Numbered from the stretch's first letter, positions 38,040 to 50,492 are shown. The stretch is 64,000 nucleotides of DNA from Auanema rhodensis (GCA_964057225.1 OZ059897.1:8432001-8496000); one strand, 5' to 3'. Program-made: numbers and translations. Notes: generated from the sequence alone by a model not told the origin.

Positions 38040-38833
38040 ATGCCTTCAATTATTCGACGAGTTGTTGATCACTTGAACAAGCTTGGAAAGAAAAAGAAGA
38101 TTCATCCAACTAAATCAACTGCTGATCTACCAATTCCTCATGAAGATGATCATTTCATTCCAATTGATATGGATGAAGATGATGAACATTACTATGAAGT
38201 TGTTTCTATTGAAAATGGACGACTTGATCTCTTCAACTGCTCCAAAGTGTAAGATTTCAAATTTCATCAGTTTTCCTATTAATGTCTAAGCTTTTTCAGT
38301 GAGGAGATGGAAATTGATAGCTTCACTCATGTAATAACTCAAGAAAGTAAATGCATTGAGGTAAGATTTCTATAAATATTTGAAATAATTTTGTTAATTT
38401 CTTTCTGATTTCAGAAACAGCGCGAACTTTGTGCTCAACTCCGACTTCGATACCTTTTCGCCGAAGCTCGCTTCATGCAGAAAGAAGAAGAGCTTCGCCA
38501 CCTTGAGCAAGTTCGATTTGAAGCTGCTTTGGAAGGAAGATTCAGCCAAGACGAATCACTCGTTATGCACAATACCAACCAAACATTGCAAGAAGAAGTC
38601 AAGGTATGTTGTAATTCAGCTACACCTTTCCCTCCCTCTCTCTCTCTCTGTATCTCTCTAACTTTATACAAAACCCTTTTAAAACTTTTTCGTTCCAATT
38701 AAAAAATTATTTTTTCCAGACATTGGATGCAAAACGTCGTCAATTGCGCAATAAATTCCTCTTTGAGCATGAGAAATACATGCAATCATGCCAGACACTA
38801 GATGCTCTGAAGCAATCAGTGGAAAATCATTAA
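38040..38833 (+). CDS. Uncharacterised 4-exon protein with a basic N-terminus, an acidic patch and a coiled coil
   Basis: TTTTTCAG acceptor ~27 nt before the ATG. In-frame splicing gives MPSIIRRVVDHLNKLGKKKKIHP...DMDEDDEHYY...|EEMEIDSF...|KQRELCAQLRLRYLFAEARF...QEEVK|TLDAKRRQLRNKFLFEHEKY...SVENH*. AATAAA at 39069. Confidence 0.75.
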
Positions 38834-39163
38834 TGAAATAAGAAAACCAACTATACAGATCTCTACGAAATCAATTAGAATCTCTTGAATATGCTCAACT
38901 GTTTTGCAAGAACTGTTTTATTTTCTTGAAACTCTTTCTTCAATCTTTAATATATTTTAAATAATTTAATTTGTTTGTATTGTCACCTTCAGACCCTTTG
39001 CATGTTTTTGCTTTTTAAATTTTATGTTCCAATGTGCATGATAGAAACAATCAAATATGAAAAACTTAAATAAAAATCTTCACAATTTACGAATTTGTTC
39101 TTTTTCTGCGAAAAAATTCAGCGGAAAACAAGTATGAATCAGTTATTTCATCTCATAGTCAGC

Positions 39164-41782
39164 TTAATTTCGGTTAGTACTGTCACTGTTGCTACTAGCT
39201 TTTGAAATTTGGTATCGAACTCGTTCGATCTGAAAGAAATTTCCATCTTCAGCCCTTTAAATTGGAAAAATTAAACCTCTTTAGCAGTTAAATATTTTTC
39301 TAATCCATATAAATCCATTGCTTCATGTAAAGTTATCTCGAACAAATTTTTCAATCTGGAAATTGGGTGAGATTAAGAAAGATGGAAAGATAAACTCGAA
39401 GGCCAGCTACTCCTACCTTTGAGCTTCTAATAAATTATTTCTTTCTAAAGCATCCATTCGATCAATTAGTAATTCTTTAAGAGGTTTCTCCTTTTTCTTA
39501 AGCTTTTCAAGAATTATGTCAATCTCGTTCGCCAAGGTGTATCTTGAAACGTAAAACTACTTAGCCAAACGCCAACAAACTTTGCATTTTTTACTTTTCT
39601 TCCCAAATAGCTTCTTCTTTTTTGATTTCAAGACATCGAGCAAGATTGTTATATTCTGCCAATCTCATGCCAAAAAAATATTTTTTTGAATTTTTTTTTG
39701 ATGTTTGACTGTCATCAGAAATAGATAATTCTGTTTCAAATGAATGTATTTCTTTTAGAATTCGATCACGAGCTCTGAAACGAATAATTAATCTTTCTGT
39801 CTTTTTTTTTTGTTTTAAATTAAAGTTACAGAAAGAGAAAGAGATCTCTCTCTCTCTCTCTCTCTGAAAGCCACTTCAACTAACACATATGCATCTACAA
39901 TTTAAAAACTTATTCAAATCCAATATGAAGCTTCAAATGTCAGTAATTTTATGTGCAAATAATAACAAAACAATAATTAATTTGAGAAATAAAAAACTTA
40001 TTTTCTTATTATACAATTCTATAACATCTTCTACAATATTCTTCACAACTTTAGCAAACAACAATAAAAATATTTGACAAAACAATATGTCAAAGTTGCT
40101 TAGTTTAACTAATAACTTCTTATTTTATAAGTTTTATAAAGCTTTTTCGATAGATATTCAGAAATATCATTGAAATAATTCTTTTTTAAGCTTCAATATA
40201 CTCTTGTAACCAATCTATGTTGAGATATATTTAGCGATGGAGCAAATGTAAACAAGATTTCAAGAGAAGATTTTACAAGTTTTTTCAGGTTGAATATCAA
40301 CTTCAACTTGATTGTACTGTTTGTAAAATCTTGTTTAAACTATACTAATGTACAAAATGAATGTGATATGAAGTATGGGATAAGCACAGCAATGGCTGGG
40401 AAGGAGATGTATACACACGTGACCAGGTTGGAAAGCAAATTCACCCGAAAGAATTTTTGTTCAAGACCAAAACGCAAAACGGGATGGTGCTGCTGCTGAT
40501 GATGGTAAGAAGGCGGATTTACCTAGGTGAAAGCTGCATCTCATCTTCACTTTTACTCTCTTCACTTGTTTGTGTATTGATAGTGGAGGATGATCCTTTT
40601 TTTCCGATAGCCGATTGCTGAAAAACATTTGTGTTAAGCTTGCGAAAAGAACCGAATTGATGTTTCAACTTACTTGAGTGAGAAGTGGCTCATCAATTAC
40701 GAAAGCGGAATCAGTTCTTCCAGATTTGCCTGAAAACACTGTTTTCAAGGACTATTTCACCGACAACTTCAAAGAATAACTTACATTCTTTAGTTTTCTT
40801 ATGTAATCGTTTTAGCATCTCTCTTGTGAATAGAATTTCCTCATCTTCACTATCATACTCGAAATGTGACACGGATGATGGTTGTTGACGAATCATTTGA
40901 TCAGATTCTAAGCGCTACAATATAGAATTTATAAAATGATTAGGAAAAAAACAACAAGAGCATTATTTGAACGTTAATGAACACCAAAAGAAGTTTTCTG
41001 GGAAGCTTTCAGTGCCGAGGAGCGCACAACATCCAGCAAATATCTTTGCGTGTTGCCACGACAACCAACAATAGAGTTCCAGCCCGCGAATGCATTAGAA
41101 ATATATGAATTTTTTTTGATATATTCGTTTAATTTTTATCTATTTCAAGCATTTTCTCAAGCCAAATAATGATAAAATATAAAATAACTAAAGATATGTG
41201 AGAGACAATAGATATATCTTATCCTATGTCTCAAAAACAACAATACTAATATTTCTATTGACAGTCTGTCTAAGAAATCAAGATGAAAAACGAAAGAATT
41301 ACAGCAAAACAGTTGAATTGAATTTTAAATAATTGGAATTTTCTTTTAGATGATTCTCAAAAGAAAATTATATGTGTCGAGTTAAAAAGATATTGTAATT
41401 GGTAGTATAATTAGTAAGGAGAAAAAGTCAGACATCATAAATATGAGGTGAAAGTAAAAAGAAAGTTAGATTGATTGACATGAGAGAGAGAAAGAGAGAG
41501 AGAAAGAGGAAGGGAGAGGGGAGGGGGGCAAAGAAAAATTATGAATTGTGAACAAGTGTTTCACGGTATATAATAAGATTCTTTTATAAAATACGCTATA
41601 TTTATATATAATATGTATGTTTTATACAGATTCCGTAGCTCTTTCTTATCTTTGTTTCATAATTGTAGTATATGTTCTACTTATTTTGCTTTACTTTAAT
41701 GCCATCAATGAAAAATACAGTTTTTAGCTTACAGCTCAAATAGAAAATGAAAGATTTTTCATATCCTCTCTCTCTCCCTCTT

Positions 41783-41829
<47 letters not shown>

Positions 41830-43717
41830 ATTATACTCAAGGTAATTTGACGGAAAACAAAACGTAAAATGGTTTCGAGGATGATTTTGGTGTAAAAGAG
41901 GATGACGATGATGTTGATGGTTATGGCGGTTGTGGTAGTTGTGAAGAAGGGCGAAAAGATGATGATTACAAAGAAAACATGAGAGGAAAAGAAACAGAAT
42001 AAATCAATGGTTAGAGAAAATACAAAGAAAAAATTTTAGTTTTTTTGCAAATAAATATTTTTCATTCACAAAATTTTGTTTTTATAAACTTCATATAATA
42101 TTATGATATGAAATATATGAAGATTCTAATATTATTTTCATTAAAGAAATGAAAAAAAACCAAAATATGATGTTCAATGTAAGAATAACTAATTTTTTTT
42201 TCTTTTACTAACTATCTGAGTGACTATCTGACAGACTAGCACTCCTACATCTAGTCCTCTACTATTACTACATACATATTCTCCTTTCATTTTCTATTTT
42301 CGCACTGTTAATCTAATCTATCCTATTCTCTAATATTTCCTTTCTTTCTATCTACCTATCGTACTAAATATATCGTATGAATAACAGGATAATATTGAAT
42401 GTGAATGATCTAATCGTGTCTCTCACTTACAATATCGTTGACAAGTTGACTATTTCGAAATGCCACTGGGCATTCTACTTCTGCGGCACTTGTTTCATCG
42501 ATTTTTTCCTTAAAAATCAGGAACAGGAAGACGTGTAACATCATTGAGATGAAAGATGAAGATAAAAATAGAAAAAAAGTGATAGAAATGAACTAAGTAC
42601 TCATAGCATATGAAGAGAAAGAATAGTCGGAGAAGGAGGACGATTCACAAACTATGAAAAACATTATGTGCTATGTTATTCCATGGACTTGTCTCAATGG
42701 ATTGTGACTTTTTATAAAAAGTGTTCCAACATTTGGAAACCAATATGCTGTGAAGCGTGAAGATATTGAAAAGAAATATCTCAAAAAGTTCAAAATTTAT
42801 AAAGTGAAATAGTAGAAATAACATCAAATATACAATGCAGGTAAATCGGACAATTTCAACTAAATTGCCAATGGGGTGAAGAGATTTGAAGCTTGGCATA
42901 GGGATGTGAATGAAAATAGAAAGCAAAACAGGCATGTTAAATACAATATTCAATATATAACAAAAGAAAAAAAGTTGTTTTATCTATTATAAAACAGTCT
43001 TTTTCACTTTTTATATGAATTTGGAGCCAAAATGAGGAAAAGGAGAAGTGAAAGTAGAAGAACGATAACGATGAACAAACTGGTATTGATGATTCAGATA
43101 TTGCCTTAAAACGGAAATTGTCGAAAACGTTTGAATATGAATCAGAAATGAGTTAAAAATAGCTGAACATACATATGCTTATTAGAATAATTCAAATTAT
43201 TTTCATATATAATATATGAATGTAATGAAAAGAAATGAAAATTTTGAACCATTTTTTCATTAGATATGAATCTGCATGGTCGTATGAAGCAGCAGGTTTT
43301 AGCTAGCTATCCAACCTAGCATTGTTTAACCACATATAGGTTGAAAGCCATTTATTTTAGAAAAGAAAAGAAATAATCTGAAATTGGATCGCAAATTGTA
43401 TTTGGTATAGTAAGAGATGGAAGAAATAGCCTTTATATACATACCATAAGTAGAAGAGGATGCAGTTGAGGGAGGGGGGGGGAGGGCAAGTTGATATGAA
43501 ATTCACAGAATCAGCAGTTAATCTGCAACAGCTGGCAGTGGACAATAGTGGAAACAACTCAAAAAAACATTATGACGTTATAAAGTTGTAACAAAAAAAA
43601 ATAATATGATTTGCAACACTTTTTGCTCATAAAGTGATTATGTTTACATCCAAAAAATATTATTAGATAACTAGATTACAAGATTTCTTTTTGAACAAAA
43701 AAGGAAAAAGAGATGAA

Positions 43718-43762
<45 letters not shown>

Positions 43763-45618
43763 GGGAGAGAGAGAGACTAGAGGGCAGAAAAAGATAGAAA
43801 GAATATTTGAAAGTACTACACCAATGCATATAAATGTTTTGAAGAAAAAAGAAGATAAGAAGTTTAAAAAAAAAAAAAGAAAAATAAATATTAATTGAAA
43901 CTTACTTGTGTGTTTGTGTTATATTTTTTTTGGAAGGGGGAATTGGAAGACCTACGATTGAGATGATGGCAAATTGAAAAGACAATTGACTTGAGAATCA
44001 TTTCCAGAAGAAACACAACAGAAAAAACATACACACAGCCGGTCATGTAAACATTCAAAATGAAAATGAAAATGACATGTAATGTCATCAGTTTGTATGC
44101 GAAAAGCAGTTAAGTTTCTTTTGCTAATTAGATGAATTTGAATGTAAGATGAAGAAGATATGTATACTATATATAGAACATAGATATGTATGTTTCATAT
44201 AATATAGTTAAGAACTGAAATGATATTTCATAACGTTTATAAGACGATAATTACAAGATTTATAAGTAGTGAAATAAAGATTTAATTATTATATTAATTT
44301 TATTATTTATTCAGCTTAGTTCATCATGAAAAAAAAAACACAGAGATCACGTTTATGAATAGACTCATATAACAGAAAAATAATGAAAAATGAGGAAATG
44401 TATGGGAATGAATGTATGGATGATGAGCCATCCGTCTCGCTTCTTTTTCTCTTTTTAAGAGCTCACATGAGAGAAGGTCTGACCTCAGATATCCAATTTT
44501 CTTTTGTGTTATAGATGTTTACCGAATTTGGATAGATGGTCAATGTTCGAATGAAAGGCCATTTCACTTGCTGTTGCCATAGATTAAACACTTTATAATC
44601 ATATAGTTAGTATAGTTAATATATTGAATAGTAGGAAGATGAGAGAAATAGGTATCGGCTTGATGAATTGAGTTAGAGAGAGAGGGAGGGAGAGAAGAGA
44701 GAATAAATTGCAATTTAAATTGTGAACGTTGAAACGTGAAGAGAAATCATTGGAATAAGGTTGTAAAAAAGGTTTTTTTTCGTTAAATTAACTTTATCTC
44801 AAGAAAATCATTATCTACATTTACGAGAGCAGTTACATGGAAATTGACCGACTAATTTGTTCATGACATTCCGAGACAATTTCTAGAAGAATTAAGAGAG
44901 AAAAGCAAAAAGATAAAGAGAGAGAGAGAAAGAGAGAGAGAGATAGAGAGAGACCTTGTTTCACAAAAACTTAAATATCTCATTTGAGAATGTAGTATAG
45001 TAATATGAAACTATGTACATGCTATTCTCAGTCTTGAAATTGGATCTTTGGCATGAATGTTAAACGAATAACGTTGACAAAATGTTTTTTATATATAAAT
45101 AGATATAACATTGGTATTCGAATATTTTAGTTCAAGCTTAATGTCACGTACCTCATATCCACGTAGAGAGCTGGCCAAGTTCAACATGCTGCTGTTGCTG
45201 CTATCAGACAATGACGAAAATGTTGTTTTATCACTAAATCCACGAATAACAATCGACAGGATACCAATTTGATGTTCCGGATTGTCAATTGAATCCACAA
45301 AGCCGTGTACAGTGAATCTGGAAATATATTGAAAAATAAAAAAAAACAAAGATGAAATAGATTTTGGAGCAAAACTGAAATCAAAAATAACACCATGAAA
45401 CACAAGTTTCTGAAAATTGTTGTTGAAATATGGAGAACTGAAGAAAGGTATGGAGAGAATGAACTGAGAGGAACATGCTTAGAACGTGTGTCCCTTACTC
45501 TAGTAAAGTCGCAAACTGAAGAAAGAACAGTTAAAAAGAGTTTTGTTGACTCTGTAAGCTCTCAACCTATCTTACGCATTTGTACCTCCCCTTACTATAT
45601 ATTTATCTCTTTGCTTTC

Positions 45619-45684
<66 letters not shown>

Positions 45685-47068
45685 TTCTTTCTCTCTCTTT
45701 TACTGTCAATTTCTAAAGAGTTTAATGTTAAATAAAATGAAAACAAACAGTTTAGCATCATATATGCCATTGATTTTCTTGTTTTTCTACTTCCAAATAG
45801 TTTCATATCTATAAATCCTCCGAATTGGAAGGACAATGTAGAAATAAAAGAGGGGAAGGAGAAATATTATGAAATGAAAAGCCAAAAATCATCATCGCAT
45901 TGAGTTTATCTTTCACAATATTTGAACAAAATGCAAGACGTCGACACAAACCGACAAAAGATATAACGTGAAGATGATGCTGAAGAGATATAAGCCTCGA
46001 AGCAAGAGAGAGAAACAAGTAAAGCTTGAAGATCGTCGACACCATTGAAAAGCGTTGAGAGTTGATGAAAGTTACAAGTCAGCTGAATGACCTTTTGAAC
46101 TCGTGAGCCTTATGGACGCCCAAGCTGTCTGATGTTGACATACTTGTGCCAGCAAATACTACATGACGATTATTGTTGAAACACAACTCTCAAACTGCTC
46201 AAATGCTTTTCACTTTTCACAATTTTTGAAAAAAGCGAGTAACAAATGGACACAAAAACCATTTCGTTCACTTCCTTTCACCTCTCATCACCTTCTCAGG
46301 TCTTTTCTCTCAATCCTATTTGAAATTGTAGTTTATAGTTTGTATTACATGTGTTCAACAAACCTTATGTATACAGCCTTATCGTCAAAATAAATACTTT
46401 TCGTCTGTTCTAATATGCCATGGTTCAAAAATGAAAATTGGTTGGCGATCTTGTAAGAAGCATTATATGACTTTCCAATTGTATTTGTGAAACGATCATC
46501 CGGAATACCAAATGCTATTGTCATTGAGCTGGCTGAAATGATATTGTGATGATGTGAGTTTCTTGACATACGTGATATGAAATGAAAGATTTTGGTTTAC
46601 TGATTCTTTCAAGTTTCAAAGTTTCAAGTTCAAGAACTTTTAGTTTCAACTTGAACAGCTTGGAATCAAAGTAAGAAACTAAGTAAGTAGATATACAAAT
46701 ATTTTACTGTATAATTCTTGTTACAAAGTTTTTAATATTGATTATCAGAAACAAAAAAAAAAGTTAAAAAGTAGTAAAACAAATAAAAAAAAATGTTATT
46801 TACGAAGATATTTTGGATGTGCTGTTACATCGATGCGTCCAATACGACATTCATTTTCCAATTTCAGAATTAGGGATTGTGGATATGAGCGGCCACTCAA
46901 AAATATATTTTTAGCTGAAACTTAGTTGATGCTGCCTTACCTCTGAGTAAACCAGCATATCTCATTTCCTTCAATTTTTGATTCTTCACGATTTTTAAAA
47001 ACATTTATTAAATTTTTATCTTTGGAAGAACATGAAATAACATCATAATATAGAGGATCTCCAGACAT
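39164..47068 (-). CDS. CEP104-like protein (N-terminal jelly-roll + linker + coiled coil; no TOG or Zn-finger region)
   Basis: Phase-compatible exons 47068-46941, 46895-46804, 46532-46398, 46158-46092, 45317-45152, 44882-44825, 44590-44484, 42518-42431, then 40914 down to the stop at 39164. N-terminus: MSGDPLYYDVISCSSKD...CWFTQSGRSYPQSLILKLENECRIGRIDVTAHPKYLPSSMTI...HKAHEFKR..FTVHG...NPEHQIGILSIVIRG. C-terminus: CLEIKKEEAIWEEKYTLANEI...RMDALERNNLLEAQRLK. Both blocks align by eye with recalled human CEP104. The linker exons between 42.5 and 46 kb are less certain. Confidence 0.72.
41766..41829. repeat. Imperfect (CT)n microsatellite
   Basis: Read directly; in an intron of the CEP104-like gene. 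Confidence 0.9.
43718..43777. repeat. Imperfect (GA)n microsatellite
   Basis: Read directly from the sequence. Confidence 0.9.
45622..45698. repeat. (CT)n microsatellite
   Basis: Read directly; about 30 near-perfect units. Confidence 0.92.
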
Positions 47069-47140: not shown

Positions 47141-47155
47141 GTTTCCTTTAGTAAC
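47141..47155 (-). promoter_or_regulatory. X-box-like (RFX/DAF-19) motif with a 3-nt spacer
   Basis: GTTACT-AAA-GGAAAC on the minus strand, 73-87 bp upstream of the CEP104-like ATG. Confidence 0.4.
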
Positions 47156-47463: not shown

Positions 47464-48366
47464 TTATTTTTGAATCATATGCTCCGTAAATAGTAATGCT
47501 CGTAACATTTGTTTCATCAGCATATTTACAGCGTTTCCAACTTCATCCGTTACAGCATCAACCTATGTTAGACGTTTTCATACATTTGTCCATAAAAGAA
47601 ATAGATAAAACTTACTAGAAAAGATGAAAACTCGTCAAATATTAGCTCTGTTCGCCTTTTCTGCTCATTTCGTCCTATAGTACTTGTCTTCATAGCATTT
47701 AAATGAGCCATTGTATAATGAGCCTTAAATGATCAAACAAAAATATAAAAAAACGTGTGAGATAGATGAGATATCAAACCTTTTCGGTGATTTCTTGAAG
47801 ACGCTCATCTTGAGAAAGCTTCAGCAAAATAGCTTCTGCTTTGTAATTCTGATATGATTGTTGTACAACAGGTCTTAATGTTCCTACCAAAACATCTAAT
47901 TCGGTCATCTATAATAGTTCATTAGAGCTTTATTACTAAATTAAAAACATATTTTAAATTCTTTTTTTAACAAAAATAATTATCGTTTTTGAATTTAATG
48001 GCGTGAACATCACGTGAAACTTCAAAAGTCATTTTGATTCAAAATTATCACATGAGCGGTTGCATTCACATCGATAAATCATAATACTTCTTTATATATA
48101 TTTATTACAACGATTATGTGTTAATTATTATTTTAATTTATATAAAATATAATGTTGAATACCTTACGTAAACGACCAATACCAGGAGTTCGATAAATAG
48201 CCATGAACTGTTTAATGACGCTATGTGTAGCATTTATTAGAAATTGAGGTTTAGGTGGTGGATCAAGTGAAACTTCATTCAAATCATATTCACGAAGTTC
48301 AAATGCTTCTTCACTTAGCCGTACAAAAATGAGAAATATACACAGCTGACGTAGAGAGGATGACAT
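47464..48366 (-). CDS. Divergent SXP/RAL-2 (DUF148)-like secreted protein
   Basis: Four phase-0 exons: MSSSLRQLCIFLIFVRLSEEA...PPPKPQFLINATHSVIKQFMAIYRTPGIGRLRK|MTELDVLV...QQSYQNYK...|AHYTM...DEFSSFL|VDAVTDEV...HMIQK*. The PxFL motif and helical pattern resemble the two neighbouring genes. Confidence 0.62.
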
Positions 48367-48739
48367 CTAAATCCGACCTAAACGATCAATAGCCTCAATG
48401 AAAAATGTGAGTAAGATATCAAATAAATAGTAAAAGTTATTGAAATGAAAGAAAAAAATACTGACTTTTGATTTGGAGATAAAGTTCAGACGATAGTAAT
48501 CAATACAATTCTATGAATATGAGATGGTTTATGGGCTTGTAAAGCTTGATTGGTATTGCTTCCGGTAGGTTGACAGGGTGTCTAGATAAAGTAAACGAAA
48601 CGTCGAACTTCTTCTGTTGACAAGTCGATCTTAGCCGAGCTATAGGCTGTTAAGGAAAGTTCCACTAAAATGATATTTAGCTTTACCTTTTGTATATATC
48701 GTTCTCTCTTCTTTACTGTCCCTTTCTCTTTCTCTCTCC

Positions 48740-48742
<3 letters not shown>

Positions 48743-48794
<52 letters not shown>

Positions 48795-48803
48795 TCTCTC
48801 TCT
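48743..48803. repeat. (CT)n microsatellite
   Basis: Read directly from the sequence. Confidence 0.92.
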
Positions 48804-49847
48804 AACTTTCCCATCTATTCCTTCATTTTCATTCAATTCATTACGTGATCTTCCCTCTTCTTGTTCTTCATTGAATTAGTAATATTTGCTGTGTTTTAGA
48901 TAGTATAAAAGGTCTTACAACGAACAAATAGAAATACATAATAGCAATTGGTATGATTATTGTATACGATGTAGGTATTGTAATTCAAGTTATTTCTATA
49001 TAATAAGATTGCCAACATACATATTTATTTCGAAAACGATATTGGAAAACGATAATCAGAGATAAAAGGATATGAATTATTGTATGATTAATATGAAAAA
49101 AAGGAAGTTACATGAAGCATTGTAATTTGTTTTTCCTAAACTATTACATATATCTTTAAAAATATTTAGTAATGATTACCTTAATGGCAGACCAATGAAG
49201 ACATTAATATACATGAAAATGGCCATCAAAATCTAAAACATTCAGCAAAAGTTACTTAATTTCTGTAAAAGTTGTATTGAATACCTATAGATATATAGTT
49301 CTTTAAGTGGACACCACATCCCGAAGGTTGTGGTGTAAAGTTTCTATTAGTTTTCATCAGCCTTATATACTAGATACTTATTATGTTATTGTAAAGAAAG
49401 ATATGAAACTTTTTTTGGATCATATTATGAAATCAGATGATAATACAGCACGTGAATGCCCTTATTAGTGAATTTCATATGAAAACATTAAAAATAAATA
49501 AGTTCTTATGATATTATAAGTTCTTATCTTTATTCAATGGTAAAAACATGTTTAGTATTATTGATAAATTATATATAGAATTCATGATTATTCAATATAA
49601 ACTTATAAAATTCTTTATTCATTTCATAATTTTTGCAGCTTACATCCAGATATTTAAATAAATAATATTTTATCTTTCCAATAAATATGAAGATGGTCGT
49701 TCAATGAGAGCTAGAGAGAGAGATAGAGAGAGAGAATATGATTCAGAAGAAAACCTGAAAACATGTTATGAAACTCAGAATAAGAAGTAAGATCATGATA
49801 CACTTCCTGCTCCGTATCTCTTTCAATTTCTTCTCATTATATGATTA

Positions 49848-50492
49848 TCAGAGATCATTTACAGTAGAAAACTGTACATTTCTTTGGAAATGCATCAGCT
49901 TCAAGATCTAAAACTTACTTTTTCCATAGCAATATTGAAAAGACCTATTTCTTTCTTTGTTTCGTCATCTAATGTCTGGAAATATTCTTGGGCACGCTTG
50001 CCATTATCCTGAAACACATCCGAATGTTTTCCTTAATTTAACAAATTTACCTTAGAATCTTCAATATGCAGCTTATGAAGGTTGTAAAGCGCATTTTGTG
50101 TTTCGGTTCTCATCTTAGATAGATGTTCTTCCAATTGACGCTTAGCTTCAGCATGGCGCCTGTTAAGGTCAGCGCGGAAAACTTCAAAAGCCAACTGCAT
50201 ATAAAGATTGAAATTTCAAAACCGTGAATCTAACGTGTATCACCTTAACCTCTTCAGGTTCGTTCTCGAGTAATTGCTCAACACGAGCATTTTTTGCATC
50301 TCTATTCAAAGAATCATCTTTGCTAATTGATATGAACTCCTGAATAATATGTTGGATGAACAATCTGAAGTTAAACCAAATGCCGCTTATACAAACCTCA
50401 CGAGCTTTATCTGTAGCTCTATCCATAAATGGTGGTAAATGTACAGCAACTGTGACTGAGAAGAAAGCCAAAAGAATGACAGATTTCATCAT
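49848..50492 (-). CDS. SXP/RAL-2 (DUF148) family secreted protein
   Basis: MMKSVILLAFFSVTVAVHLPPFMDRATDKARE|EFISISKDDSLNRDAKNARVEQLLENEPEEVK|LAFEVF...|DNGKRAQEYF...AMEK|FSTVNDL*. Signal peptide plus the PPF..A...AREEF family motif. Confidence 0.8.

Follow-up and report, generated by a model that had tools for sequence, protein, structure and literature searches.

What does the 64,000-nucleotide stretch of the Auanema rhodensis genome analysed here (GCA_964057225.1 OZ059897.1:8432001-8496000; hereafter, the window) encode between positions 39164 and 47068, and how does the product relate to the ciliary-tip protein CEP104? CEP104 is a Joubert-syndrome protein whose TOG domain caps ciliary microtubules and slows their growth and whose jelly-roll partners recruit it. 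The human protein contains a jelly-roll, coiled coils, the TOG domain, a zinc-finger (ZnF) module, and an SxIP motif; its jelly-roll binds CSPP1, CCDC66, and CEP97, its coiled coil dimerises, and its TOG domain binds tubulin (PMC12203965, PMC12170345). We think it probable that the window gene is an 11-exon, TOG-less CEP104 paralogue that is orthologous to a group of short rhabditid proteins and that most likely functions as a dimeric ciliary adaptor. An earlier note on this DNA had described a CEP104 homologue ending after its coiled coil, with no TOG domain, zinc fingers, or SxIP motif, and that description is borne out: the orthologue from Auanema sp. JU1783 (P0002; CAI4232052.1, 382 amino acids (aa)) matches the Pfam model CEP104_N (PF21038; cut-off 27.5 bits) at 46.1 bits (E 6.6e-12, positions 2-119/120), and the N-terminal domain of the window protein aligns with that of a TOG-bearing gene on the same contig, here called locus B, with a z score of 13.5. 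The gene is real and the earlier reading right in outline; it is not novel, belonging to a nematode family that is conserved, automatically annotated, and unstudied.

Gene structure and orthologues

Three-frame reading combined with splice signals gives a spliced minus-strand gene running from the ATG at 47068 to the TAA at 39166-39164. Its 11 exons (E1 to E11) encode 431 aa, every intron begins with GT and ends with AG, and all phases are compatible. The window is AT-rich, and the introns of the gene hold (AG/CT)n microsatellite arrays. The features of the gene are listed below, with identities given relative to P0002 and joints taken from the RNA contigs discussed further on.

46941-47068, minus: E1, aa 1-43, start of the jelly-roll, with the ATG and a phase-2 donor (AG/GTAAGG); 72% identity; the phase-2 intron that follows is placed as in locus B
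46804-46895, minus: E2, 92 nucleotides (nt), best-conserved jelly-roll motif
46364-46532, minus: E3, jelly-roll core, phase-2 donor
45152-45317, minus: E4, final jelly-roll strands (NPEHQIGILSIVIRG), then the beginning of a Ser-rich linker; 59% identity
40785-40914, minus: E5, acidic motif EYDSEDEEILF..ML.RL; RNA joints at either end in four runs
40674-40738, minus: E6, linker, weakly conserved; RNA joints 40738/40785 and 40617/40674 in four runs
40523-40617, minus: E7, linker; acceptor confirmed by RNA, donor (AG/GTAAAT at 40523/40522) predicted
39775-40522, minus: intron 7; the dominant RNA contigs keep at least 340-580 nt of it unspliced
39595-39774, minus: E8, end of the linker and first coiled-coil helix, in frame with E7
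39417-39542, minus: E9, coiled coil, 69% identity; RNA joint 39355/39417 in run X3
39277-39355, minus: E10, coiled coil, 69% identity; RNA joints on both sides in X3
39164-39229, minus: E11, short unconserved tail and the TAA at 39166-39164; RNA joint 39229/39277 in X3
38922-38975, minus: poly(A) signals nearest 3' of the stop, ATTAAA twice and AATAAA

The small, phase-compatible exons in microsatellite-rich DNA that had been described for this locus are thus found, and the count of at least 14 gives way to 11. The peptides quoted at the time fall in real exons (E1/E2, E4, and E8/E9/E10) with the exception of the 'HKAHEFK' block, which had been taken for an exon with a CEP104 match. This block (46082-46189) sits in intron 3, and the match is spurious: the block is phase-incompatible with the E3 donor and is missing from all three orthologue alignments. 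The phase-2 donor of E3 instead joins the E4 acceptor directly, and the orthologues read ..YIR/FTVHGF.. with no insertion (3/3). Rfam gave no match in the window gene, intron 7 included.

The joined 431-aa model was used in local alignments, and P0002 served as its proxy in database searches and structure prediction. An exhaustive search of 1.84 billion proteins with E3 as the query returned P0002 (61% identity at residues 75-129) together with P0003 and P0005, which are exon-sized fragments from other samples; P0001, P0004, and P0006, also returned, are repeat proteins and were rejected as spurious. The joined model aligns with P0002 over the whole length, first Met to tail, with 59% identity, and E2-E4 (59-62%) and E8 (59%) are conserved alongside the exons given above; only the E6/E7 linker and the final 20 residues are unconserved. 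The gene encoding P0002 has introns at matching places and the same two neighbours as the window gene. It differs in size, at 2.9 kb versus 7.9 kb, because the introns of the window gene are rich in microsatellites, and the unconserved E6-E7 linker is longer in the window gene. Likewise, in L012, a contig of genomic DNA from a third nematode, the exons recur in unchanged order with E8 and E9 fused into one, which confirms the predicted E8/E9 junction. In word searches, E4 retrieved nothing owing to the length window and P0002 by itself retrieved no other protein; a profile with more rows was needed to reach Caenorhabditis angaria, where it returned P0007 (375 aa; CAI5443853.1 / UniRef100_A0A9P1IFE3), a protein of the same layout that UniRef names 'Centrosomal protein CEP104 N-terminal domain-containing protein'. 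MAFFT misplaced exon fragments in larger sets, and those alignments were kept out of profiles and folding.

What do these proteins have in common? P0002 and P0007 resemble the window protein in having a jelly-roll, an acidic EYDS.DEEILF motif, and a coiled coil, after which they end; their whole-length identities to it are 59% and about 35%, respectively. All three orthologues end no more than about 20 aa away from where the window protein does. The acidic motif, EYDS(E/D)DEEILF(T/S)..M(L/V).RL (40786-40860, minus; aa 203-228), lies inside a linker that is not conserved elsewhere. Each pairing of three species shows 64% identity over the motif, L012 has it as well, and its sequence likely represents a short linear interaction motif. 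In the Atlas, P0002 adjoins clusters of 60 and 117 short (294-424 aa) CEP104_N(+UVR) proteins that are mostly from nematodes where taxa are recorded and of which 13-17% contain UVR. The window gene shows the features of this short nematode CEP104_N family: a length of 300-430 aa; a jelly-roll, acidic motif, and coiled coil; and the same neighbours. The claim that the gene was hidden or new therefore falls, since the same short form exists in Auanema sp. JU1783, C. angaria, the third nematode, and the Atlas clusters. The earlier note had itself allowed that a short form shared by all nematode CEP104 orthologues would not be novel, and this holds in spirit. Its observation that the stop at 39164 is followed by a convergent gene is correct on both counts, and that neighbour is syntenic in Auanema sp. 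JU1783. With both flanking genes syntenic and the downstream gene convergent, TOG exons cannot lie beyond the stop.

Relation to CEP104 and to locus B

Which parts of CEP104 does the window protein retain? Its jelly-roll spans about aa 1-156 and is followed by a Ser/acid-rich linker and a probable helical coiled coil at about aa 316-410. In an exon-by-exon Pfam scan E2 was the only exon to match, single exons being too short; E2 alone scores 21.5 bits against CEP104_N (E 2.8e-4, model positions 9-33), below the cut-off, and P0007 scores 38.8 bits. The TOG model (PF21040) has no match in any window exon, P0002, or P0007. The C-terminal zinc fingers (PF21039) have none in the window exons, P0002, or P0007, and there are only 4 Cys among the 431 aa. 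Finally, neither the window model, P0002, nor P0007 contains an SxIP motif of the form [ST]x[IL]P. Other proteins share the fold class of the N-terminal domain, for the jelly-rolls of IFT25/HSPB11 and APC10/DOC are likewise galactose-binding-like. However, IFT25 lacks a coiled coil, unlike the window protein, and P0002 matches F5_F8_type_C only weakly (E 7e-4 and 7e-3), CEP104_N being far better. The window protein thus resembles canonical CEP104/FAP256 (human O60308; locus B) in having a CEP104_N jelly-roll followed by a probably homologous helical coiled coil, and it shares its first two introns with locus B. It differs from canonical CEP104 in lacking the TOG domain, the zinc-finger array, and SxIP, and it is under half the length.

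A search of the whole genome (181-Mb assembly) with three CEP104 Pfam models turned up a fuller CEP104 gene, after the earlier note had suggested looking for a full-length one. This gene, locus B (G000:C5:8812845-8816104, minus), and the window gene share a contig and are 335 kb apart; locus B carries a jelly-roll, UVR, and TOG. Read by exon, it gives matches to CEP104_N (28.5 + 17.3 bits), UVR (21.0 bits), and a CEP104-like TOG domain (32.5 + 15 bits, colinear), the sole TOG match in the genome. Locus B apparently ends after the TOG domain, without zinc fingers. The joined N-terminal domains of the two genes align with a Smith-Waterman score of 90, against 28.8 +/- 4.6 for shuffles, and their coiled coils are colinear with a z score of 5.4. 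Both genes have a phase-2 intron after W(F/I)(T/S), a 92-nt exon 2, and then a phase-1 intron. A tblastn search of the window model against locus B DNA found nothing significant because the motifs are split by introns that the two genes do not share, and joined models were needed. Since locus B has its own jelly-roll, coiled coil, and TOG domain as well as the shared introns, the window gene is an old paralogue of it that arose by duplication and domain loss, not half of a split gene. We also note a CEP104_ZnF-like Cys/His array at G000:C6:6561028-6561449 (minus; 24.8 + 19.7 bits, below the cut-off). It lies 3'-terminally in a long coiled-coil gene that lacks a jelly-roll and a TOG domain, and, to judge by these matches, A. 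rhodensis seems to carry the zinc-finger module of CEP104 in another protein.

We propose, by analogy with human CEP104, that the window protein would most likely serve as a dimeric adaptor in sensory cilia. Its coiled coil would provide the dimer, and its jelly-roll would bind partners at the ciliary tip or basal body. Because it has no TOG domain, zinc fingers, or SxIP, it is not predicted to bind tubulin, CP110/NEK1, or EB1, and it would be unable to engage tubulin or EB1 directly. It may function independently, form a heterodimer with the locus B protein, or compete with that protein. Of the options put forward earlier, that of a scaffold-only paralogue or modulator remains the best reading. 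In Caenorhabditis elegans, C40H1.3 is cepr-104.1, a listed CEP104 orthologue (PMC10425847 supplement; PMC11804779). We compare this nematode CEP104-related gene by name only; its '.1' suffix implies more than one C. elegans paralogue, which would match the two genes here.

The pairing of genes has consequences for how CEP104 function may be dissected. Rhabditid nematodes keep a TOG-less copy beside a TOG-bearing one, so that the recruiting and tubulin-binding modules are naturally separated, and the TOG-less copy could serve C. elegans genetics directed at the jelly-roll, acidic motif, and coiled coil alone. The outcome for the locus itself is an exact and partly RNA-supported gene model in a family that is already present in public protein sets and has not been studied.

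Transcripts and alternative readings

Is the 431-aa protein what the locus mainly makes? Spliced contigs from four RNA runs of one study were placed on 39201-45200. Every joint reads CT..AC on the plus strand, and the RNA therefore comes from the minus strand. The joint 45152/40914 (E4 to E5), which ties the 5' block of the gene to the 3' block, occurs in each of the four runs, and so do 40785/40738 (E5 to E6) and 40674/40617 (E6 to E7). The joints 39417/39355 (E9 to E10) and 39277/39229 (E10 to E11) come from run X3 only, at a depth of about 3. The suggestion that the 5' and 3' blocks might be separate transcripts is thus answered in part, since the E4-to-E5 joint links them in every run and the E7-to-E8 joint was not seen in the contigs of any.

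Several observations count against the proposal that the gene acts chiefly through a 431-aa ciliary adaptor. Besides the unseen E7-to-E8 joint, E1-E3 appear in no contig of the four runs by 31-mer accounting (margin about 3 standard deviations per run): the 31-mer shares are 0.18, 0.12, 0.12, and 0.10, the placed pieces account for them fully, and E1-E3 would add about 0.037. The dominant contig (39941-45324, minus; depth 16-34) starts 0, 2, 7, and 7 nt past the acceptor of E4 in the four runs. It is spliced E4-E5-E6-E7, leaves the E7 donor unused, and continues into unspliced intron 7; records 1, 6, 10, and 12 are continuous from 40617 to 39941, 40027, 40181, and 40181, respectively. This read-through brings in a TAA at 40521-40519, and the product from E1 would be 282 aa. 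Because the dominant contig starts at E4 and keeps intron 7, and because the depth over E9-E11 is about 3, the conserved long mRNA is a minor species at best in these four runs. At the protein level, Pfam UVR is unmatched in the window exons, P0002, and P0007, and the orthologous sequences are gene predictions too. The AlphaFold2 model computed for P0002 (8-row alignment) has a mean predicted local distance difference test score (pLDDT) of 47.7, too poor for a test at the level of the fold; this low-confidence model has strands to residue 159, a disordered stretch, and long helices at 206-376. Localisation, dimerisation, and partners are all drawn from human CEP104. C. elegans is not known to have an obvious CEP97 or CP110, and the partners may differ.

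It is possible, although on balance unlikely, that the main product of the locus is a truncated RNA starting at the E4 acceptor with intron 7 retained, rather than the 431-aa protein. Such an RNA could arise from an internal promoter with spliced-leader trans-splicing and could either encode no more than a 109-aa acidic peptide (M174 to R282) containing the conserved motif or be non-productive; the full-length form would be rare or confined to ciliated neurons. The contig ends just described fit this account in 4/4 runs, with 340-580 nt of intron 7 included, as do the 31-mer shares, which the placed pieces explain with no room for E1-E3. A transcript beginning at the E4 acceptor looks like one with a trans-spliced 5' end, and the dominant RNA is possibly an internally started, trans-spliced, intron-retaining transcript. 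However, the letters upstream of E4 could not be read in the contigs, contigs show presence and not absence and lose rare variants, and neither intron 7 nor any other part between E7 and the stop contains an AATAAA-type poly(A) hexamer. Furthermore, coding conservation extends over E1-E3 and E8-E10 (59-72% identity), which indicates that the long form is under selection. There is a small chance that the E4-start RNA is a deliberate second product, either an acidic decoy micro-protein or the output of a regulated intron-retention switch. If so, the 109-aa micro-protein, carrying only the invariant EYDSEDEEILF..ML.RL motif, would act as a decoy for whatever binds the motif, or retention of intron 7 would decide whether the jelly-roll is made with or without the dimerising coiled coil. 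This abundant transcript is the unexplained part of the locus.

Two further readings were considered. That the locus holds two genes, a jelly-roll gene of E1-E7 ending at 40521-40519 and a coiled-coil gene of E8-E11 starting from a Met in E8, strikes us as improbable. The missing E7-to-E8 joint, a five- to ten-fold difference in depth between the two blocks, and an in-frame Met in E8 ahead of the helices would all suit it. Yet coding conservation in E8 already covers its first residues (RDRILKEI), which precede that Met, and neither phase nor frame breaks between E7 and E8. The Auanema sp. JU1783 and C. angaria gene models hold both parts in one protein, and the order and architecture are those of CEP104 and locus B. 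Still more remote, and very hard to reconcile with the genome search, is a CEP104 divided between two genes, the other of which would encode the TOG/ZnF half, with the halves reassembling, an option that the earlier note had listed. CEP104-like TOG and CEP104_ZnF matches do exist elsewhere in the genome, but the TOG gene, locus B, carries its own jelly-roll and coiled coil, and the ZnF match falls on another contig, in the terminal part of a different long coiled-coil gene. We retain the single TOG-less paralogue as the preferred reading.

Candidate X-box and neighbouring genes

A candidate regulatory site lies upstream of the ATG:

47141-47155: candidate RFX/DAF-19 X-box, GTTTCC TTT AGTAAC, a perfect half-site pair with a 3-nt spacer, 73 nt upstream of the ATG

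Two such sites occur in the 64 kb of the window; shuffles average 0.91 strand-hits, or about 0.45 sites. A similar block precedes the ATG in Auanema sp. JU1783, and a half-site pair lies about 60 nt upstream in L012. The sequence of the candidate suggests control by the cilia regulator DAF-19/RFX. Among the observations made here, it is the one that bears on a possible localisation to the distal centriole and ciliary tip, as for CEP104. It fits expression in ciliated neurons, which would explain the rarity of full-length mRNA in whole-animal RNA. A second, X-box-like palindrome, GTTGTCGTGGCAAC, lies in intron 4 (41052-41065), about 140 nt upstream of E5, with one mismatch to the usual 14-mer. 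It was rejected as a candidate, being at chance level under that 14-mer (12 found, 15 expected).

Finally, the genes on either side of the window gene are conserved in Auanema sp. JU1783, and Pfam has no match for either of them. The upstream neighbour (47467-50215, minus) stops some 400 nt short of the ATG (115 nt in Auanema sp. JU1783), has exons that reach 95% identity to its orthologue there, and has a spacing that looks operon-like. The convergent downstream gene (38040-38833, plus) has a coiled-coil-like tail ending at 38833 and is syntenic in Auanema sp. JU1783 at 60-77% identity per exon; about 330 nt separate its 3' end from the window gene's stop, and the two 3' untranslated regions probably overlap.

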